Assembly: GCA_907165135.1 (NCBI GenBank)
Contig: OU015566.1
Coordinates: forward strand, 9,610,001 to 9,674,000
Length of the DNA stretch: 64,000 nucleotides
Direction of reading: 5' to 3'
From: Oikopleura dioica
Lineage: Eukaryota; Animalia; Chordata
The notes under the pieces are model-generated. The model searched no databases. It was given only the letters and a program-made list of their open reading frames with translations, and had not been told where the DNA came from. Position numbers and translations under genes: made by a program. Shown in pieces: positions 26,142 to 44,113 of the stretch. Within the stretch, counting starts at the first letter, position 1. Each line of letters opens with the position of its first letter.

Positions 26142-28109
26142 TCATGAGTTTGTAACATCTCTTCCATCATCTTCATTTGAGCAGCATTCGCAGGCTGCGA
26201 AATCGCAGCACATGCCACCAAAAACATAGCAAAAACCGATTGGTAAAATTCAGGGCTGGATATTTTGAAATCAGCAAAAATTTCAAATCAATTTTTGTGT
26301 GAAATCTCATTTCTATCTCAAAATTTTGCACCATCTCAACAAATCTCAAATTTCAATATTATTGCAACTTCCTCGTCATAATTTTTCCATTCTTGAGATT
26401 GCTGAGATCTCGAGATCTCAAATCTCAAAATTTTGCGAACCGCGCAAGGGCCGCGGACAAACGTCGCGGGCTTACAGCAAGACTTGTGATTGGTTCAGAT
26501 GGACCTGAAATGCTTGAGATCTCAGAATTTCAAATTTCATTTCATTGCAACGCGCGTATCCAACTCACGCAGTTTTCTGAAATGCTTGAGATCTCAGCAT
26601 TTCAAATATCATTTTTTTGCAAAATCGAAAATTGAGATCTCAGACACAAAAATTTCTGAGATTGCATTTTTGAAATGGATGAGATGATGATTCATGTTTT
26701 TTTCGGGGTTTGAGATTTTTGTTGATTTCAAAATATCCAGCCCTGGTAAAATTGCAATGAGGCAAGGCCAGCAACAGATCAGTCCCAATTGACTGCCACA
26801 ATACTCCTCGTTCACTTAATTTTTCTTATCAAAAGCAAACAACATCGACTCTTACTGTCGTTGGTCAATTTCTTTAATCCTGAGTAGAGTTGTTCCTGAG
26901 TCCAACCCAGAGTTCGAAATCCGAGAAAATATAGCTGCTACCTGCTACCACTTGCTTTCACCTTAGTTACAAATGTATTTTCATCACATTTTTTATGGAA
27001 AAATACATTCTAGAACAAAATTATTTAAAATGGTAGCAATGCTAGCAGGAGACGATTTGCTACAACTTGCTACCACCTCTGATGACATTGCTACCTGCTA
27101 CCATTTGCTACCAAAAGTGGTAGCAATGGTAGCATGCTACCATTTGCTACCAATTGCTACCATCGGATTTCGAACTCTGGTCCAACCTGTCTGAAGGAAG
27201 GCTTTTTGTGAGAATAAAAAGAAAAATACGTACGAGTTGAAGGACCATGATGTCCTCTTCTGAAAGTGGCATTGATTCAGTCCAGTCTGAAGAAACTCCG
27301 ACACAGTTGGTAGTTGTTGGATATTGGTACAATCGGTCGTCGTAATTATCATCATCGCCGCATGCATCCAGGCCTCCTAAGAGGGGACTTCCTAAGAGTA
27401 AGAGCTAGGTTTAGACCTGGGAGTCCCGAGGCTGGGACACAAATACAAACCAGGAAAGACGTCTTTGATCATTTTTGCAATCTCCACAGGTGTAATATAA
27501 TTAGGACTCAAACTCAAAGTATATAATGTTGGTCTGTTTGCATTCGGATTTTCGCGAATTCTTTGAAAGTATTCGAAAAGCATTTCTCTCCGGGTATTGA
27601 ATGAAGCATCTCTCGGAGCTCTTATCGGTTTTAATAATCGTCAATTCTATGGAACAAAAAGAAGAAGAAAAATTAAAACTGCATTCCCTAAAGTCGTCTT
27701 TGAAACTCTCGTAAGATAGCTCGTCACTGCTCACTGGCGCCGAGTCGTAGTTTGAAGTCGGCGATGCATTTCTAAGAGAAGTTTCGTGTTCTGCCGCATT
27801 ACTGTCTGTAAACACTGAGCCAGCTACAGGTCCATTTTCTACTGTATTGGTTGCTTCTGGTAAATTAGAATGAGCATTTTCTGTTGGCAAAACGGAGCCA
27901 GCTACGGGCGCATTATAAGCTGCATTGTTTGATGGCTCGAAACTGTAAGGATCATATTCAGTTGAAGCAGGAGGTTGAGGCATAGCATGGCTCTGAGGAA
28001 GTTCTGGGACGACTGGTTGAACTGGCTCGGAAGTAAGCCCTGGAAACTGATAATCCGACCATGGATTGTCGGTCGTTTGCCCAAATTTATCATCCCCAAA
28101 GAAACTCAT
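26142..28109 (-). CDS. Multi-exon protein with C-terminal Cys-rich TM segment; two exons interrupted by hAT MITEs
   Basis: Removing each MITE plus one TSD restores ..QTGWTQEQLYSGLKKLTND.. and ..CCWPCLIAILPIGFCYVFGGMCC..; the first motif matches the neighbouring paralog. Confidence 0.6.
26251..26745. mobile_element. hAT-type MITE (495 bp)
   Basis: TIR CAGGGCTGGATATTTTGAAATCA; perfect 8-bp TSD GTAAAATT; internal gagatctc repeats. Confidence 0.92.
26908..27179. mobile_element. hAT-type MITE (272 bp)
   Basis: 17-bp TIR CAGAGTTCGAAATCCGA; perfect 8-bp TSD GTCCAACC; internal tgctacc/ggtagca repeats. Confidence 0.92.
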
Positions 28110-30412: not shown

Positions 30413-33080
30413 CTAAGCTTTTCTCCGCAAAAATGACCCCTGCGAACTGTAGTTCGGCGAAGTCTGGGTAGTTTGATCGACGAATTGTCTGTTTTCTGCG
30501 CTTGATTGCTTTCTGTTCTTGTCCTTGTCTTCTCGGAAAGCAACGTCAACTGCGATTTGAATCAGCCCACCCAGCCAGCTCAGTCCCATCAGCATCTATC
30601 AACGTCAACTTCATTAAATTGCTCCGACAGCTTACCCATAAAAGACAGACAATTCTGTAGAAAACCGATACGACACCCATCCAGAACTCGTTTGTACCTT
30701 AGAAGATCGTCTCATAAACTCTGTTGTATAAAAAAACTAACCGGGCAATTTCCAATTCTTTTGCGTTTGTCCTTCGAACTCAGCTGTCGGCGTCAGGTCT
30801 CCAAATCCAATCGTAGTCAGAGTAATGATCGTAAAATAGAACGCGTCCAAGAAATCCCAGCCCTCTATTTTTGAGAAGAAAAGCGCCGGCATTACCGAAA
30901 ATATCCTGAAACAGACTTTGAGTAGGAGTTTCTTAGAATCATCTCTACCCGAAACCGATGACAATGTAGAGCGATATCGCTGTTCTTTTCCCACGAAAAC
31001 GGTAGAAACCAGCGGACTTGACGAATTTGTGTAGATAGTTTCCAGTGACTTTCATCAAGTAATAAAAATATGGAACACCAAACAAGGCGTAGATCACGCA
31101 AAACATCTTGGAAAAAATAATTATCAATCGGACGAAATTCTGTGGAACGGACCTTGCCATATTTGGTCTTTGGCGCAACGTTGCCATATCCGATCGTGGT
31201 AATAACGGTGCCCACGAAGTAGAAAGCGTTTTTGAGAGAGAGGCGATTTTCTGGCAGTTAGACTTTCTGGCAGTTAGACTTTCTGGCAAAGGCGATTTTC
31301 TGGCACTGCCAGAAAATCTAATATGCCAGAAAATCTAATTTCCAGAAAATCGCCTCTTTTGATTTTGAATCTACAGTTAGTGATCCTGGAAGGTAAAAAA
31401 ACGGAGAGGGTTTTCGACAGTACCACCAATTTTTTCTTACATGTTTTATAAAAATTCATTGACAAAAGCCATTTTTGACCCATTTATTCAAGATAATTGG
31501 CTGTAGCAAACATAAATCAGCTTCTTCCGGGAATTTTCACCCGGTGTTATTTGCATCTGATTTCGAGTACTTGGTCACAGTGGGCACCCACTGAGATAAT
31601 GGCGCACGCTCATGCTTTTTAAAACTGAACTTGTTATAAAACTCTCCTGAAAATTCTTCCTCAGAAGGTGGTGGAATCGCTGTCATTTTCAATATTTATC
31701 TATACGATTTTTCTTCCTTATCATTCTCCATTTTCTCAAAAAAATCAAAATCTAACTTTTCAGCTGCCTGTGAACCCGTTTGTCACTCCGAAAACAGCTA
31801 GAACGAACTGCGGATGCTACCCTCATTCTATTTTTAGCGCAGAAATTTCAATTCCCAATTCGTAGTCTTTTTTTACCGCCCTGAATAGTCGGCTTTTAGA
31901 TCAAACGCTCCCGTCGAAAGGTGCAAACTCCTGCTGAAACTGCTCCGAAATGAAATTTGTGTGATAATCACCAGTTTTTCGAATTTATAAAATGATTATT
32001 ATTAAGAGTTTCTTGCAGAATTTCAAATAATATCCATCCTATAAAGGCGATTTCACCACCTGAGGAAGAATTTTCTGGAGAGCTTTATAACAAGTTCAGT
32101 TTTAAAAAGCATTAGCGTGCGCCATTATCTCAGTGGGTGCCCACTGTGACCAAGTACTCGAAATCAGATGCAAATAACACCTGGTGATTAACACAAAAAT
32201 TCCCGGAAGAAGCTGATTTATGTTTGCTACAGCCAATAATCTTGAATAAATGGGTCAAAAGTGGCTTTTGTCAATGAATTTAAAAAAAAAAAACATGTAA
32301 GAAAAAATTGGTGGTACTGTCGAAAACCCTCTCCGTTTTTTTACCTTCCAGGATCATTAACTGTAGATTCAAAATCAAAAGAGGCGATTTTCTGGCAGTT
32401 AGACTTTCTGGCAGTTAGACTTTCTGGCAAAGGCGATTTTCTGGAAGTTAGATTTTCTGGCAGTGCCAGAAAATCGCCTTTGCCAGAAAGTCTAACTGCC
32501 AGAAAATCTAACTGCCAGAAAATCGCCTCTCTCCGTTTTTGAACGTCCAGTTTTCTGGACAACCGTGTTCAAGAAGCGCTCCAGTATCGCTAAAAATATA
32601 AATGCGAGTACCGACGATTTGCTTACCGGGCGACAGTTGTAATGGAGTCAACAAGGAGAACATAATTGTCAGCTGACAAAGTCACATTCCAATCGACACC
32701 TTCTGGCTTAGTCTTTTTGAACTGGTTCCAAATCCAAACCTCCGTCCCTTTATCAATAAATAAAGTCTAAGATCTATTCTAATTTTAACTCTACTGCATG
32801 ATAGATCTGCCGAATACAAATTAAAAATGAAGCAGATTTTAAGTAGAAGCATAAATGCTTGCTTACCCGCCATATAGATATTGCTTATGTTTTGTGCAGC
32901 TTCACAGAGCGCGATTTCATTCGGGCGCTCAGTCTTAATAAATTATTGTCTGAATGAACTTGCATTTGAAAATGCGAACAAACCATTAAGAAAATCGCTG
33001 CCCCAAAAGCCAGGTACAGAAAATAGACGGCGATTCGACCACAGTAGCCGTACGCATCCGGCAAGTGACAGCCCTATATA
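30413..33080 (-). CDS. Two-pore-domain K+ channel (K2P) 1; P1 exon interrupted by a foldback element
   Basis: [63 protein letters not shown]; 5' exon(s) unresolved. Confidence 0.9.
31236..32533. mobile_element. Foldback/MULE-like non-autonomous element (1298 bp)
   Basis: About 445-bp inverted arms starting GAGAGAGGCGATTTTCTGG, with 16-nt tandem/palindromic subrepeats; perfect 9-bp TSD CGTTTTTGA (31227-31235, 32534-32542). Confidence 0.95.
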
Positions 33081-34682
33081 ACAAATTAGGGATAACACCC
33101 AACTACCAAAATATGGTTGAATTACCTTTTTCTTCTCCTTTTGCCCTTCGGAAATTTGCAGCGGAATCTGTTGTTTTTGATAATAACTTTCAAGGTTCGA
33201 TACCAGTTAGATTTTAGAGCTCATTAATGAAATACTGTGAACGAATATGTATTTTCCTTGCCTGTTTTGTGAAATTTGCGCAGTGAAGTCAGGTTTTTCT
33301 GCTCTTTTCTCTTGGCGAGGGCTTTCGCCGGGCGATGCTTCCGAAACTCCATCTGTTGGATTCTGTTGGAAAAGAAACAGCACTTTTTCGCCTTCAATAG
33401 AATACTTATCTCGGAAATATTCGTATAAAGAATTTTGAAGGGTTCCTGTCATATTGGCAGAAGCAAGCGCAACTTTCAGAAAAGTCTCATTTTTATTCTC
33501 GTCATTTTTGTTTGTCTTCGTCATTTTGGATCTTCGCGAGTTGATTTCAGTCTCATTCTCTGGCTTAGTTGTATATGCACGTAAAGAACGAAAAGGAGAA
33601 AATATAAAAATAAACTGGAAAGCATCGAACAGGCGGACGAGCGTGCGGGCGACATCCGCTGTCAGCACAGTCAAGCAGGTACTGCAGCCGAGATTCAGAG
33701 ATTGCCAATACGCCCCATCACCCGCAAAATTCAATCAAGAGGGGTATCTATTCCAAATAACGGCTAATAAGTATAAGCTGTTGAAGCGCTTTTAGTGAGA
33801 TAAGACTGTTGTACCAATTACTTAACAAAAACTCTATCGTCAGATGTAAATCATTCTATTCGCAAAACCTTGGATAGATTATCAAAAGAATAATCTTCTG
33901 AAGATTTGATTGATTGAATCAATAACAGTCATAAGAATTCACTTTGATAGATTTATCATTGAGATTCAATACTTATTCGTTTTGAAAACTCATCGTTTTA
34001 ATTTGTCCGATATCAACCTTCGGAAAATTCAACATTTAAAAGACATATTCCGATATTCTGACAGGAACAGTTTGTCGATTTACCTTTCACCGCCTTGAGG
34101 TCATTAAAGTTTCTGATCCCAGCAGGAGGTCAAGAAGCAAAAAGTGTCGTTTTATACGTCACGCTGTCATTTTCAAGGACGTTGATATAAAAATTTTACT
34201 CATTAATTCCTTGATCAAACATTGATATTCCGATGATACATACAAAGTGCCGTAGTCGCAGACTTTTGAGAGGATGACTTGTACTTTGGATACTTTATTA
34301 TAAATGCAAATGCTAGAATTCTAGTTCGACTCTTTAATTTTGGGCAATAACGATTGCAGAATCGACTGAACAATGATGCCGTCACTGATGAGCTACATTT
34401 TGCAATATTGAATTATTCAGCGTCAATGATAGGAAAGCTGTCTGATGTGGTGCATGAGTACGTTCTGTCATCCTAAGAGTATGCTTGAGCGGATCGTTAG
34501 GCACAACGAAAACTGAGCAGTGGTGCGAACGTCGCGTTGCTGATTTAGAATCACGCGCCGATCATACAATTGTCAATTGTAATACGTCTTGTAAAACGTT
34601 TGTTTATTACAGAATTAGATCAAGAACATGACTGTCAAAGTATTTAAGAAGTTAAAAGATTGCCGTAAAGTTGAATTAGAAA

Positions 34683-36885
34683 TTACTTTTTCCCTTTTTT
34701 CTGACCTTTAGTAGCGGCTTCAAGGACATAAATAAATTTCTTCTCAATATTGAAGTCTTTTGTTAGAACTTTTTCGATGTGTTTTGCTTGGTTTCCTTGA
34801 ATTTGCACTTGTATCAGTTTTCCGCTCACATCTGTTCCGATACTTGCCGATGCCTATTAAAAATATTGAGCCGAGAAGGATAGTTATGTCTCTACCTGGG
34901 CGAGCTTTTTCATCTTGTCAGCGAACAATTGCGGATCAAGAAAGAACGATTCAAATCCAGTGATCATCGATACCATTTTATTGCCTGAGACCTTCTTTGT
35001 CGTCAAATCGATGCGGGGCATCTTCCCCTTCTTGACCGCTGCAGTTGGCTGTCCAGGAAACTTGACAGAGTAGGCTGGACCCATTTTTGATTGAACACCT
35101 CCAAAAACTTTGTCCCAGGAGGCCGTTTCTTTATCTGCACCGCCTTTTCCGAAAACCGCTTGATGAAGAACAGGGTCCATTTTTACATCCTTCTTTCCTC
35201 GTAAATCATTTGCTTCGATATACTGAAATCTTATATTGATGGTGATTTGAAGAATGATTCAATACCATTGTTACGAATTTTCGAATATCCTGAAGATTGA
35301 GAACTGCACCACGCCTGCAACCAACACTCGTGAATAAGTTTTCGACCTGACCAGAGACGACATAAAGCTGGGTAACCGCCGGAGCAGAGTAATCCTCTTT
35401 TGTAGACGAAGAACCTTAAACAACCATTATCATTCTTTCATGATAGTCTGCGCGTTTTTCACGCTTCCGTGCACCATTGACTTCATTTTGTGTTATTCTT
35501 GTGCATTATCTGGCAGGCCAGTGGCAGCCGATTTCTGGCATGCTCTATTTTCTTACCCAAAATGTTAACCATCGGCTTGGCAGCTTCTTCAGTAGGCTCG
35601 TCTGCTTCCACCGACTCTTGCCATCCACGGAAGTACGAGTGCTTGAAATCAACGGAAGAAATCTGATCAACGCCGCTGCTAACTTGTCCGATTTTCAAAA
35701 TGCCATCTTTTTCTTTCGCAGAAAAGAAGGTGGAAAGCTTCTTGAAAGAAGTTTTCTTTATTTTGAGTTCTTTTCCGTTTGGTACTGATGGGAGAAGATA
35801 TTGAGAGAAGAATGTCGAACAGAGAAGAGGTAGAGCTCCCTAAACATAATTTTCGATAGTAAAACAAGATAGATTACTACCTTATCCTCCTGAAGCTTTG
35901 CCTTGACGGCGATTTTAAAAGAATTTTCTAACAGAGAATCTTGTTCATTTCGCATTTCTTCCAGACTCTTTTCTGGAGCCTCTTCGTCTGCCTCTGTAGT
36001 TACGGCTTCACTACTGTTTTCCTCGACTTTGCAATCAGGAGATTCTTCAGTTTCAGCTTCATTATCAGCGGTTCTCTCGGTGGATTCGTCGTCAATGTCT
36101 ATTTTAGGGGTCATTTTTGTAATCTTTGGAGCAAATTTCGGATATTTTGCTAAATTTAAAAGATGAAGTTTTTGTTTAAAGTGAGTCCCAATCATTGATA
36201 TCCAAATTTTCGATATCTTCTTGCGTCAGCGTTCTATATGAACATTGTCAAAGAAATTCTTGTAGAATTTTCCCAAGTGGAAAGAAGTGAGGCACCTGAA
36301 CTGCGGATCTGTCTCAGTGGGTGGGATCTTCTTGCTCCCACTCGCCCAGAGCTGATCGCCAACGCACGAGACAATCTTCACGGCTTTGCCGCTCAAGCCC
36401 TTCGAAAGCTGCTCTGTGGATTGCTCCGCTACTCCTATCGCGACGAAGTGCTTTTGCCCGGCGATTTTGATGCAAACGGCTTTGTTCCGTTCAATTTTCT
36501 CGTGCACCCCGACCCCAGGAGAAAGAATTATTCCCGGTGCCATCAAATCGGCTCCGTTGGCGAATCGTTCGAGGACATTTCCAGTCGTATGGAGCGTCGG
36601 AACACCCAGAAATTCATAGCTCCAGAGCGAGTAGAGATAAGGAATCAATGTCCCGTTTTTCATCTCGATCACTGTTGGTTCCCCTTCCACGGTAAATACA
36701 GTTACTGGCTCTCCTTTATGCGTAACCACCTTCATTTCTTTCAAATCGCCCTTCGCCGGCACCATGGAATTGAGCGTCTCTTCCGGAGTTTCGGGAAAGA
36801 AATAGGCAAAGCGACTTTTCAACTTTCGCCGATCGGAATTACGGACAGTTACTGCGCTTTTGCTGCGAAACGGCTTTACGAACAT
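34683..36885 (-). CDS. EIF2D: Eukaryotic translation initiation factor 2D (ligatin)
   Basis: MFVKPFRSKS..RNSDRRKL, PUA domain (NGADLMAPG), C-terminal SUI1-like KKVSGNKMVSMITG..QIQGNQ. Confidence 0.9.
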
Positions 36886-38170: not shown

Positions 38171-41100
38171 ATGTCGGAAGGAAGGAGCGAGCGTTACCGC
38201 CCGCCAGAGCCGAACCAAATGTTCACGCTCGGACACGATAAGTGGAAAAGAAATGGCCCCTCAGCGCATCAGGTACTGATATTTGATTTCCTGTGGTTTC
38301 TGACAGTTACGGTAGTCAACAGCAGGAGCAGTAGAAGTGCGAGATGCAAAAGGCCGCGTCGTCGGCCTCGAAAAAGTCAAAGTAACTCGTTATATGGCGG
38401 GTAAACGTCCAGACTGGGCGCCAGACGACTTCGATTCCGACGAAGAAATCCAGATCCAACCGAAAAACATCAAAATTAAAATGACAGGCGCTACGGTCCT
38501 TTCTGAAGAAGCGAAACAGGCGGCTTCTGGCGAAGAAGGCGGTACTTCCGAAATTAGCAATTTCGAGGACTCGGCTGCGGTAGCTGCTGATCCTCGACTT
38601 GCTCGACTCATGCGCCATCAAGCGGAGATCAAAGACGACGACGAGGATGATCGGAGAAGAGTCAGACATGAGCCCGTCATTATGTCGAGTGAGGATGAAG
38701 ATGAAAAAGAAGAATCTGATGACGGTAAGTCTTCATGTTTGCTTGACCTGAAGCTAGAATCTTCAATTTCTCTAGAAGCCACGGAAAAGAGGCGAGAACT
38801 AATAAGAAGGCGGAACTTGGAGCGAGAAAAGCAGGAAGCAGAAATCCTACCGCTCGACGATGATCTTCCAGATATCCAAGCCGACGATGAGAGCTCAGAG
38901 TACGAGACTGAATACGAATCAGAAGAAGACGAAGGACCCAGGTTGAAGCCTGTCTTTGTCAGAGAAAAAGGTACATTTCCCCTTCATTTTGATCTTTTTA
39001 CGAGCAAATATATTAAGATCGTCTAACAGTGAAAAACGCTGAAATCGAAGAAGCGAAACAAAAGCGTATTGAAGTCGAAAAGAAGAAACTAGCAGCCAGA
39101 GTGGCTATTTTGGACAAAAAATAGGGGTCTATCCATCCAAATTCCATCCAAAAAATTTCTAACCGGGTCTATCCATCCAAAATCCAATCCAATCCAATTT
39201 TCGCCCAATTCCCAACTAAAATCCAATTCCAAGTTCTTCCGAAATTCCAACTTTTCCCAATTCCCAATATGCCCCGATTCCATTGGATTTCCAATATTTT
39301 CCAGCTAGCAAATTCAAAAAAAAACAAACAAACAATACTTATTCTTCAAAGTTTATTTCTGTAGATCCAAGGGCAATGTCTAGGATTGTGCTGGCAGCAA
39401 GTTTGTGGCGTCGAATAGATCGCATCAATGTCGTGAAACTGAAGGCTCGCTCCAGGCTTGAACTTGAGACGGAAGAGTGATGAAGCTAAGAAATGCTTTA
39501 TTTTTGAACTCAAAAAAACCGAACCATTAATCCGATTCTGCTCAATCTTGGCAAGGTTTCAGCGTATCGCCGCCAGAACTCTCCAACAATATCATCTTCC
39601 GCAACCTTCTTCATTGCGCAATACTTCTTGTCTAATTTCAAATAAAGTAGATTAATGATGAAAATTACTTACGCGCTTCTATATCAGTATCATTTACTTC
39701 GTCGTACTGAGCAATCTCTTCTTCGATCTTGGAACGGATTTCTTTTGGCTTTCCTAGTCCGCGGCGGTGACTAAGTGGGCCAACAGCGTTATTTTGGCTG
39801 TCACATTGAACATTATTAACGCCAGCTTCAAGGAGCTGTAACAACTGTTCATCTGTCAGCTCGTCGTCTTCCATTGTTCGATCAACCTCTGTGATCCAGT
39901 TCTTCGCTTTTTCGAGCCAATCCTTGGTTCCGTCGACGAGTACTTTCTGAATTATTTTTTTTTTTTTGGCATGAAGATAAATACATACCATTATTTTGGA
40001 GATGAAGGGGACTCGGGAATCTTTCATTTTGGCGACGACTGGATGAAAATTCATCGCTATCGATGTAGAGTCGGGTGCCAGGTAAATGCTTGCCAAGTCT
40101 TTGTTGGTAAAACGAAGGGGTACTTGACATGGGACATCGTTTCCATTCATATCAATCCGCTTTTTTGTAACCTGTTCCACCACACTGATGAGCACAGCCT
40201 TCGCAAATCTGGATTCCTCGGTCCGACTGATTGTGATTCGATTGACGCACTCAATCATTATTCGTTCGATTTGCTTGTAGTACGCTGATCCGCAGGCAAG
40301 CGAGTCAGACTCGAGAATATTGATACTGCGATGAATTTCGATAAGAAGAGGGTTGATTGATCGCGCAAACTGCAGATCTGGGACTGGACACTCAGCGAGA
40401 AGATGGCGTTGAGGGTGGTTGATAGAAAAGAGGTTGTTTAGGCTATCTTCGCTCAAAAGGAGACGCTGAACTCCATAGATTAATTTCCGGAAGCGCGTGG
40501 AGCCGGAAATTCGATCGATGGCCTTCCCTTTCTCCTTTCTGTTGAGGAATGCATCCGTCTTTTCTTCAACAAGTCGTTTGACTTGATCGTCTTCAAGAAT
40601 TTCAGTACTCGCTTTTATTTTTGCATTATAAAACTCTTTTATAAGCAAGCGATTAGTCACTTCTTGAGAAATCAAAAACGCATTGATTGACTTGTATCCG
40701 ACACCAGCCGGAAGATCACTCGCCGATACTGTAGCTTCACACTTGTCGATGAATTTTTCAAGTGATTCGTACTTCTTATCCTTCGGTCCACCTGGTCTGA
40801 GATTTTGTTCGCACGCTCTCTTAAGGTTGCAACACATTGAATGACTTCCGCAAATGCTACGGTTGATCGTAAAATGCTCGGGCACGGACTCTGCTGCCTG
40901 ATCGCTCACAATGCAGACCAAGTTTTCTCTATCGCATCGGTAAGGTTGTATTCTTCAAATATCTGCTTCAGTTTTTCTATGGTGTGATCCGCAGTTGAGT
41001 CCGGCATCGGAACATAACCGATCAAACAGTTCCAAAATCCGTTTTTGCAGCGAATATTGACCTCAACCCCGAGTATCTTCCAGAGCGTATTTTCTTTAGT

Positions 41101-43041
41101 TTTCACGTATTTGTGGTCTTTAAAGGATATTAAATTGTTAATAAGACAAATTATTCAAAAATTTTTAAAGAAACTTTGAAATCCTTATCCTAGAGAAATT
41201 GACAGGCGGCCCTTTTTTGCCATTTCCGGAAGAATCTGTTGAAGGCGCTCCCGAATTTTCTTTGCCTCTTCTTTCATGTATATTTTGATGGCATCCTTCG
41301 AAAGGCAAAGTTGATTGATGAGCATCTGGCTAAAGGATACATTTTTGAGAAGGCAGCGCATCAGGGCCTTGACAGAGTCATGTGACCAAAACCGGAAGCT
41401 TGTTCCGGTATCGCGCATGACTTGCAGAACTTTCTTCTGGACATCAACTCTGTGGTCCTTGGTGTTATTCAGAAGCGCGAGTACTCTCTGCTCATCTGGT
41501 GCTTGCGCGTGGCGATCCACAATCGGTTCGAGAGTCTTTTTATAGACATCTGTATTTTGATCGTATGTATGGAATGGCTTAAGGTTTTTTAAGAATTTTT
41601 ACAAAATGCAAATTTTACCTCTCCTCTGCATTTTTTGCACTTAGCTCCATCTATTCTTGCGCAGCGCAAGTAGCAAGTCGGAAATCCCTCGAAATAGTAC
41701 TCTTCAAATTCAAGGTTGAGCTCTCGAATCTTGTCTTGTAGTTTTGTAGGGGTCCATTTCTTCCATTCACCAGTCGGTTGCTCACTTTTTTCATCAGCAG
41801 TAATTTCCGCTTTCTTTCTATCAACCTCTTCTTTTCGTTTATCCTTGTCTTTTTCGTCACTCGCCACATAAATGCATCTCTTGGAACGCTTGGCAGGTGG
41901 ACTCATCCCTTCTGAAAAAAGGTTGACTAGTAAAAGAAAAGAAAATGCCATTTAAATCGCAGTAAAACTCTCTAATGATCAGTATTTATCCGTCTGAGAA
42001 AGGTAGACTGCGCGTGATGAGTGTAGGTTGAGAACAAACCTGATTGGTCGATCATTTTTTCGCAATTTTTTCTCGGATCCAATCTTGCCAACAACTGCCA
42101 ATTCCCCAAGAAGATCCAATTTTCCAATGTCGCCAATCCCCAATTTCCCCCAATTACCCAATTTTACCCAATAAAATCCGATACCCTGGCCATCCAAATT
42201 CCATCCAAACCTTATTGGATTGGATCCAATCCAATTCCAACTAACCCCCAAGTCCAAAATAGCCACCCTGCTAGCAGCCGAGAGGAAAAAGTACACCCTG
42301 ACGATGATCGAAAAAGACGCGAAAAAAGACTTTGAAATGGAGAGAGACGAGAAGACGCTTCTGGAGGCGTGTGACTCCGATGATGGAGATCCAGACGTCG
42401 AATTTGAAGGTAAAAATGAAAAGAGGGGACTTGTTTGCTCAAACTTATTTTCTTACTTTAAGCTTGGAAATTCCGAGAGCTGCAGCGTCTGAAGCGAGAC
42501 CGAGAAGCTCGTGAAGCAGAAGAAGCAGAGCAAGCTGAACGAGATAGACGCAGAGCAATGACGGAGGAAGAGCGAATCCGGGACAACGAACTCAACCCGA
42601 AAATTATTACCAATGCTCAAAATAAGGGCAAGATGAAGTTCTTGATGAAATACTATCATCGTGGTGCCTTCTACATGGACAAAGAGGAGGATATACTGAA
42701 GGTACTCCTTTATCGACTTTACACATTTATAAAATTATTCCAGCGAGATATCATGCAACCTACGCTCGAAGATCACCAAGACAAAGAAGCTCTTCCAGAT
42801 GTCATGAAAGTCAAGGTGAATACAAGATTTCTTTTGAGTTTCTTTTCTGACTCAATCATTTTAGAATTTCGGAAGGTCTGGCCGTACAAAATGGACTCAT
42901 CTTACTGCCGAAGATACCACAGCCTTCGATGGTACTGCCGGTGGAGCCTGGGCGGCCAAAGACAACACGACTCATCTTAAATATGGAGCGGGTTTTAAAC
43001 AGACTTTTGAGCGGCCGTCAAAGAGAAAGAAACTCTCTTAG
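38171..43041 (+). CDS. MFAP1: Microfibrillar-associated protein 1 (spliceosomal B-complex factor), exon split by a hAT transposon
   Basis: KVTRYMAGKRPDWAP, PRLKPVFVREKDRLTV, LAA|ERKKYT, MTEEER, KMKFLMKYYHRGAFY, FGRSGRTKWTHL. Confidence 0.92.
39097..42269 (-). mobile_element. hAT DNA transposon (3173 bp), near-intact
   Basis: 19-bp TIRs CAG(A/G)GTGGCTATTTTGGAC; perfect 8-bp TSD CTAGCAGC; subterminal (AT)CCAA arrays; internal transposase gene. Confidence 0.95.
39339..41906 (-). CDS. hAT transposase, multi-intron, one apparent frameshift
   Basis: NLS PPAKRSKR, SISL|D, DSTADHTIEKLKQIFEEYNL, IVSD, ICGSH, FWRRYAETLPRL..SSSSLERAFS; one base missing near 40921-40927. Confidence 0.85.
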
Positions 43042-43160
43042 ACCGACTCGTCTGATTTTAACTTGCACTAATTTCTGTACTGCCCTGTTTTTAATTGTAA
43101 ATCGTAACTGATTCCCATGCCAATTCAATTTTCCAGTTTTAAAAAGAGGATTATTTTAGA

Positions 43161-44113
43161 ATGGCAACACAGTTCGACGAGTACTCTAGAGGCGATCCAT
43201 TCATTCATGCCGCTGATCAGGGAAACAACTGTAAGTCTGCCCTTCAACTGAATTTTTTAATAATTTCGCCAATAGCGGCCGAGTACAAGCGTCACTGGTC
43301 TCCTTATTCGTGGCACGGAGGCACTTGCCTGGCTATTGCCGGCGACGATTTCGTTCTGATGGCTTCTGACACTCGACTTGGCGAACATGGAGGCATTTAC
43401 ACTCGCGAGCTCAACCGAAACAGCAAAGGTAGGGGACAATCATTATTTCTGCTTGCACAAAGACAATTCTAGTTACCGATCACTGCGCAATTGGCCAATG
43501 CGGCTTCCAGGGAGACGCACGCGTTTTGCTTCAAAATGTCAAAGCAAAGATTCGAATTTACGAGCATCAACACATGGAGCAACCAACTGCTCCTGCCATC
43601 GCTGCCATGCTTTCTACCATGCTTTATTACAAGTAAGCGACACTTATCAGCGGATGAGTCTTCATCTCTTGAATTTTAGACGTTTCTTTCCATACTACGT
43701 GTACAACATCGTCGCTGGTCTCGACGGAGAGGGCAAAGGCTCTGTCTTTAGCTACGATCCTGTCGGATCCTACGATCAGGTCCCGATGGTCTGCTACGGC
43801 TCCGCTCAGAATCTTATCCAGCCATTCCTTGACAATCAGATCCGACGACCTCACATCAAAGTAGCTACCCCTCCTATTTCAATCGTATTTACTATCTCTT
43901 TCAGGAAGATGAAGCACCAAAGATGACTCGAGAGCGAGTTCGTCAATTGGCCATTGACGCGTTTATTTCCGCTTCTGAGCGAGAAACCAACACTGGTGAC
44001 GGGGTCCGTCCCTTTATCTATCAAAAAGTCCTAATCAAAGCTTTCAGATCACTGTTACACTCATCGACAAGAACGGCACAACTGTTGAGACAATTCCACT
44101 CCGACGAGACTAG
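43161..44113 (+). CDS. PSMB1: Proteasome subunit beta type-1 (beta6)
   Basis: [70 protein letters not shown]. Confidence 0.92.

Follow-up and report, generated by a model that had tools for sequence, protein, structure and literature searches.

Does a gene that carries a complete DNA transposon in a coding exon splice it out of the message, or is the allele broken? This question is raised by MFAP1 in the reference assembly of the larvacean Oikopleura dioica, OKI2018_I69 (GCA_907165135.1), in which a hAT element interrupts one exon of the gene. The stretch studied, called the window below, is 64,000 nucleotides of contig OU015566.1 (positions 9,610,001 to 9,674,000, forward strand), and positions are counted from its first letter. 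A preliminary description, made from the letters of the window, had placed a near-intact hAT element in the exon and had proposed that a GT-AG pairing across it serves as an escape route. The explanation we favor, with a probability of about 0.7, is a recent germline hAT insertion into codon 262 of MFAP1 that was present in the I69 male and is absent from all other samples examined. On this explanation the filled allele would most likely be null and carried heterozygously, and the splice pairing would be a coincidence.

The insertion and its host gene

The coordinates of the insertion and of the interrupted gene are collected in Table 1. By inverted-repeat search and direct reading, the element is bounded by terminal inverted repeats (TIRs) of 19 nt each, which are complementary at 18 of 19 positions. 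Direct reading also found a perfect 8-bp target-site duplication (TSD) on both flanks. The two ends of the element are the only occurrences of the TIR pattern in the window, where 0.01 matches would be expected by chance. One terminus is CAGAG and the other CAGGG; both begin CAGR|GT, as had been described, and a repeat search found short repeats clustered just inside both of them. This search upheld the TIR and TSD anatomy of the preliminary description, but the length given there (3173 bp) is corrected to 3,174 bp. The insertion of the hAT element is a real transposition.

The interrupted codon is codon 262 (GC|C) of MFAP1, and the protein is divided at LAA|ERKKY, as first reported. Read-through into the TIR gives LAA-RVAILDKK and then a stop, which is 8 codons and agrees with the earlier estimate of a stop within 9. 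The host gene was recognized by a Pfam PF06991 (MFAP1) match to the downstream exon (E=1.7e-14) and by orthologous open reading frames (ORFs) in other O. dioica lineages. When the exons are joined without the element, the coding sequence of the empty allele is open over 467 codons. An RNA contig from X1, a marine metatranscriptome, shows the intron upstream of the interrupted exon (38971-39017) and places the start of this exon at 39018. With the TSD, the TIRs, the PF06991 match and the domain of a transposase homologue described below, the claim of a near-intact hAT element inside a coding exon of MFAP1 holds.

The public OKI2018_I69 annotation was guided by RNA-seq of the same culture (PMC8008620). 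It has two MFAP1 models across 38171-43041 (approximately 9,648,171-9,653,041 of OU015566.1) and places no intron over the element. The first model, g2588.t1 (Oidioi.mRNA.OKI2018_I69.chr1.g2588.t1, listed as P0014), is 270 amino acids long and ends in KKKLAARVAILDKK, in which LAARVAILDKK is the read-through into the TIR. The second model, of 186 amino acids, starts at an internal methionine near 42337 and carries the MFAP1 domain. The annotation can now be corrected: MFAP1 of OKI2018_I69 is one gene of 467 codons and not two models.

Table 1. Features of the interrupted MFAP1 locus, in window coordinates.
Feature	Position	Strand	Details
MFAP1, 5' part	38171-39096	+	Exons 38171-38272, 38316-38724, 38776-38970 and the left piece of the interrupted exon, 39018-39096; agrees with public model P0014 up to LAA
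Left TSD copy	39089-39096		8 bp, CTAGCAGC; direct reading; single copy in all empty-site contigs
hAT element	39097-42270		3,174 bp; TIRs and TSD; 13 homologous protein clusters map here alone within the window
Left TIR	39097-39115	+	CAGAGTGGCTATTTTGGAC; candidate donor GT inside, at 39101-39102
Transposase gene	39339-41951	-	About 792 codons, 5 exons: 41951-41619, 41535 (or 41549)-41190, 41117-39673, 39631-39525, 39485-39342; stop 39341-39339
Sole break of the transposase frame	40923-40926	-	Run of four A; P0001 and P0008 align continuously across the switch from frame -2 to frame -1
Right TIR	42252-42270	-	CAGGGTGGCTATTTTGGAC (minus-strand reading); direct reading and repeat search
Right TSD copy	42271-42278		CTAGCAGC; holds competing AGs at 42273-42274 and 42276-42277
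MFAP1, 3' part	42279-43041	+	Rest of the interrupted exon, 42279-42409, and exons 42463-42701, 42744-42815 and 42865-43041 (stop included); PF06991, X1 RNA contigs and frame reconstruction

The site in other samples

The empty allele was recovered from both DNA and mRNA. In DNA run X25, a 2,818-bp contig joins 38370-39088 directly to 42271, which is an empty site, at a depth of 214. Close by, this run has a heterozygous stretch whose two contigs have depths of 120 and 103. The depth of 214 is therefore diploid and the X25 sample is homozygous for the empty site. DNA run X28 has contigs in which AAAGAAGAAA stands directly before 42271, again an empty site. In the metatranscriptome X1, a 292-nt contig consists of 38846-38967, 39015-39088 and 42271-42366 and represents spliced MFAP1 mRNA. 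Its junction is the same joint as in the X25 DNA contig and reads GCC GAG AGG.

A protein search was conducted with the ORF that runs from the right end of the element into the exon. It returned 29 ORF clusters, and the sequences of 18 were read. These 18 have LAAERKKY or LAEERKKY across the site or start beyond it. Five environmental genomic contigs, some of them labelled TARA, are the sources of the two best matches. Their identity to the flanks is 95.6-98.4%, and every one of them is empty, reading gaagaaa-CTAGCAGCC-gagagg. The assembly of a divergent lineage, GCA_977009715.1, is empty at the site as well. Among all samples examined, the filled site was seen in the reference only, and with empty sites in the two DNA runs, the five environmental contigs and the other assembly, the insertion is neither fixed nor common at this locus. 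It is a polymorphism that appears to be restricted to the reference animal. The caveat of the preliminary description, that this may be a rare or heterozygous allele, is thus the reading favored by the samples.

RNA run X6, which carries the same species label, gave 23 reads at the locus. Most are 90-95% alike, which marks a divergent lineage, and they are uninformative here. Among X6 and X9-X24, most runs with this species label have almost no 31-mers in common with the window. The low sharing of 31-mers and the divergence of X6 fit the known cryptic lineages of O. dioica, for which the species label alone is a poor guide to runs.

The flanks of the insertion differ in their relation to X25. 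Over the 719 nt upstream (38370-39088) the sequence matches that run exactly, and downstream (42279-43200) it departs from it by 21 substitutions and 8 gaps within 930 nt. This pattern fits a change of haplotype at or near the element, as would be expected in an unphased merged reference. OKI2018_I69 was built from a single male with approximately 3.6% heterozygosity, and HaploMerger2 was used to merge its diploid draft of 99.3 Mb into a reference and allelic sub-assemblies (PMC8008620). The sub-assemblies made by HaploMerger2 are unphased (PMC5870766). The same haplotype switch, together with a filled junction that was seen only in the reference, would also fit an assembly artefact, or a somatic event in which the insertion lay outside the germline of the sequenced animal. 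We regard this as very improbable. The locus is otherwise colinear, and its perfect 8-bp TSD around exact TIR ends is the signature of transposition and not of a chimeric join. In addition, part of the downstream differences is common to X28, and these differences are therefore real polymorphisms.

The events proposed by the favored explanation would be as follows. An autonomous-type hAT transposon would have inserted recently, in the germline, into codon 262 of MFAP1. The insertion would have been carried by the I69 male, whose two haplotypes were merged into the OKI2018_I69 reference. From the unspliced filled allele, a protein truncated before the conserved MFAP1 domain would be made. Because the truncation precedes this domain, the filled allele is most likely a null, loss-of-function allele. 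It would have been carried heterozygously in I69, where an intact allele would cover for it.

Several points weigh against this explanation. The reads examined come from samples other than I69, and the heterozygosity of that animal is what we infer. The RNA examined represents the empty allele (X1) or a divergent lineage (X6), and in-frame splicing is not refuted by it. Contig data show presence and not absence; a filled allele may exist unseen in other samples. Finally, because 11% of O. dioica introns are non-canonical (PMC8008620), arguments from the strength of splice sites are weakened.

The closest parallel to the favored explanation is the class of heterozygous transposon alleles found in merged assemblies of single individuals. 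The likeness includes one heterozygous animal, an unphased merge, an insertion absent elsewhere and a broken gene model (PMC8008620, PMC5870766). The difference is that here heterozygosity in I69 is deduced. The case is a warning that this reference, merged from a single animal, carries insertion alleles that are unlike the population norm.

Possible removal of the element from the transcript

Spliceosomal removal is the alternative raised by the preliminary description. The candidate donor is the GT at 39101-39102, inside the left TIR (CAGA|GT), and the candidate acceptor is the AG at 42281-42282, whose G is the fourth base after the right TSD. When 39100 is joined to 42283, the sequence becomes CTA GCA GCC AGA AGG; length and frame are kept and a glutamate is changed to arginine. 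The existence of this pairing and its product were reproduced. If it were used, the element and one TSD would be removed as a 3,182-nt intron and full-length MFAP1 would be made, and the filled allele might be tolerated even in homozygotes. The element would then be a nascent introner, which we consider unlikely.

Several observations favor it. The geometry is exact, and both TIR ends begin CAGRGT. The spliceosome of O. dioica is permissive, given its share of non-canonical introns, and the element's own gene has a GA-AG intron. A second element in the window is also of interest. This hAT-type miniature inverted-repeat transposable element (MITE) belongs to a different family and lies at 26908-27179 (26900-27187 with its TSDs), with an 8-bp TSD, GTCCAACC, and perfect 17-nt TIRs, CAGAGTTCGAAATCCGA. 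Its ends are CAGAGT, and on the minus strand TCAG follows its TSD, which places an AG at +3/+4 as in MFAP1, at a site that may lie outside coding sequence. Introns that arose from transposons have been documented in a second larvacean and in further tunicates (PMC11282704, PMC12130899).

The evidence from transcripts and proteins points the other way. The preliminary description had proposed a search for GCC AGA|AGG junctions, and we saw no read or contig with this joint. The sole mRNA contig recovered across the site, from X1, has the sequence of the empty site and not the predicted 39100|42283 joint. Among the 18 of 29 ORF clusters that were read, neither LAARRKKY nor a filled junction was found. 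The RNA-guided annotation has no canonical intron here, though a GT-AG hint would have been usable by it (PMC8008620). The glutamate that would be replaced is present in every sequence of the O. dioica complex that was read, and in human MFAP1 as well.

The splice sites themselves are not convincing. By eye, the candidate donor (AGA|GTGGCT) and acceptor (GCCGAG|A) were compared with the introns of the same gene. The five MFAP1 donors read are AAG|GTACAT, AAG|GTAAAA, AAG|GTACTC, AAG|GTGAAT and CAG|GTACTG, and the native acceptors are preceded by T-rich tracts. Both candidate sites are weaker than the native ones. The candidate acceptor is preceded by three other AGs, which end at 42262, 42274 and 42277, and use of any one of these would put the message out of frame. 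Competition from the TAG and CAG in the TSD had been foreseen; the AG at 42262 is an addition. The median intron has 49 nt, and the proposed one would be approximately 65 times as long. Nor is the exact-length geometry improbable: an AG falls at +3/+4 after the TSD at 10.5% of MFAP1 coding positions, and some nearby in-frame acceptor exists at 49% of them.

Most likely, the GT(39101)-AG(42282) pairing arose by chance from the target sequence and does not function as a rescue. Any use of the in-frame route is probably low, and its message would be expected as a minor product next to frame-shifted ones. The proposal of an escape route in use is therefore not supported, given the empty-form mRNA, the weaker sites, the three competing AGs and the annotation without an intron. 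What survives of the overall reading in the preliminary description is a near-intact hAT element in a coding exon, with CAGR|GT ends and an exact pairing. The frame would also be preserved if the interrupted exon, which is 210 nt long without the element, were skipped altogether. In that case 70 residues would be lost, with the conserved LAAERKKYTL stretch among them, and this is an unlikely rescue.

A broader form of the idea is that hAT elements of Okinawan O. dioica are tolerated in coding exons, even those of essential genes such as MFAP1. The CAGR|GT ends and an AG of the target would allow removal in frame by a permissive larvacean splicing machinery, and excision by TIR pairing would be an alternative to it. 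The MFAP1 copy would be an introner at birth, in an animal whose introns are known to turn over on a massive scale. This is doubtful to about the same degree as splicing of the MFAP1 copy alone. If carriers do splice the element out in frame, the locus would offer a rare live view, in a chordate, of an autonomous DNA transposon giving birth to an intron; none of our findings points that way. The larvacean Fritillaria borealis is known to have introns born from MITEs (PMC11282704). With the introners and MITE-derived introns of Micromonas, dinoflagellates, F. borealis and Styela clava, the insertion has in common a TIR element with a TSD in tunicate coding sequence, with one splice site in the element and the other from the target (PMC11282704, PMC12130899). 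Introners differ in that they are short, present in many copies, fixed as introns and demonstrably spliced, whereas this is a 3.2-kb, autonomous-type, polymorphic copy for which no spliced form was found.

Other known systems offer a second comparison. In maize, Ds and dSpm are exonic transposons that are spliced from mutant alleles. Like these elements and like C. elegans Tc1 (PMC12779559), the MFAP1 insertion is an exonic DNA transposon with splice-like ends and a possible partial restoration of the frame. In contrast, spliced mRNAs were observed in those systems and none was observed here.

Removal from RNA could also take place without the spliceosome. In C. elegans and in human cells, exonic DNA transposons whose ends pair are excised in this way by SOS splicing, a process with the factors AKAP17A, CAAP1 and RTCB. 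Its substrates include several DNA transposons that are unrelated to one another (PMC12779559). Applied to MFAP1, pairing of the TIRs would lead to imprecise cuts near the inverted ends and to mixed products, a fraction of them in frame. The filled allele would then be leaky and not null. The element is an exonic DNA transposon, and its ends pair at 18 of 19 positions, which is the stated trigger of the process (PMC12779559). On the other hand, a 19-nt stem across 3.1 kb is short and hAT elements are absent from the cases in that work (PMC12779559). Together, these points leave such excision quite unlikely, and a most likely null allele, as in the favored explanation, is retained.

The transposase gene and the hAT family

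Four large minus-strand ORFs are colinear within the element and belong to one predicted transposase gene with four short, host-style introns. Three homologues (P0001, P0003 and P0008) were aligned by tblastn, and this element was the sole location that they matched in the window. The alignments skip the predicted introns exactly, with gaps of exactly 24 and 13 codons. The intron at 41189-41118 (minus strand), placed by homologue alignment, is 72 nt long and has GA-AG borders; others include two GT-AG introns that are very short, at 39 and 41 nt. In its introns, the gene of the transposon thus follows the unusual style of its host. The exons add up to 2,375 nt, which is one nucleotide short of 792 codons, and there is therefore a single frame break. 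Either a true mutation or a homopolymer error in the Nanopore-based assembly could account for it.

The homologues came from a HMMER scan of 1.8 billion representatives, which gave 13 clusters. P0003, a contiguous ORF on a Logan contig, contains PF05699, the hAT C-terminal dimerisation domain (E=5.6e-10). This domain aligns to 39629-39354 of the element at 40% identity, including the SLERxFS motif; the two C-terminal pieces of the element have no Pfam match by themselves. Motifs such as DHKYV, VSDQAAE, CGSHS and SLERAFS can be seen by eye in the translations, as can D, D, E and CxxH-like motifs.

Direct searches with the element's own protein gave little. A Pfam scan of the four large ORFs and the two C-terminal pieces found no significant match. 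A word-indexed protein search with the 418-amino-acid ORF found no relatives, and an Atlas feature search gave weak, hAT-flavored leads. No relevant PDB sequence was found with the same ORF or with a profile of 10 sequences. An AlphaFold model of this ORF (pLDDT, the predicted local distance difference test, of 72) is almost entirely helical, as expected for the alpha-helical insertion domain that accompanies the RNase H-like DDE catalytic fold of hAT transposases, and Foldseek of the model against the PDB found no match at E<=0.001. The ORF of the first exon (41589-41951) has cysteine pairs and no Pfam match, and no N-terminal BED zinc finger was recognised. Many hAT families lack a recognisable BED finger, and this criterion has little weight. 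An exact-product look-up of two ORFs of the window found nothing on record. A metagenome scan for the upstream flank gave no match, and a scan for the TIR gave 3 matches without further similarity to the element, which is approximately the level of chance.

The TIRs of the hAT superfamily are short and begin (C/T)A(G/A)NG. Judged from the sequence, we identify the element as a divergent, near-intact hAT because of its 8-bp TSD, its CAGRG termini, its subterminal short repeats and the domain of its homologue. It resembles Ac/Ds, hobo, Hermes and Tol2 in the 8-bp TSD, the short CAGRG TIRs, the clustered subterminal repeats, the PF05699 domain of the homologue and the D/D/E and CxxH-like motifs. 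It differs from them in that its protein is very divergent, with 13 homologue clusters and no direct Pfam, PDB or Foldseek match. It also has no recognised BED finger, and its gene contains four short introns of the host style, including the GA-AG one.

In DNA runs X25 and X28, the body of the element has approximately 7 times the depth of the flanks, and its ends have 25-50 times that depth. Based on these read depths, the family is repeated in the genome. Neither the TIR pattern nor the mapping of homologues revealed another copy within the window. With this element, a divergent hAT family that is probably still mobile is documented for a genome in which 44% of the repeats are unclassified (PMC8008620).

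The oligo-dT plankton metatranscriptome X1 contains contigs of the element itself (39218-39533, 39923-40095 and 41438-41697) at approximately the depth of MFAP1 mRNA. In two of these, predicted transposase introns are retained. Such contigs are more suggestive of antisense or read-through transcripts, or of carry-over of DNA, than of mature transposase mRNA.

Elsewhere in the window, a public model of 775 amino acids (32171-36114, minus strand) combines eIF2D domains (WHD, SWIB and SUI1) with a potassium-channel Ion_trans_2 domain. In the model adjoining it, eL37 is mixed with the PUA domains of eIF2D. The two are probably merged or mis-split annotations.

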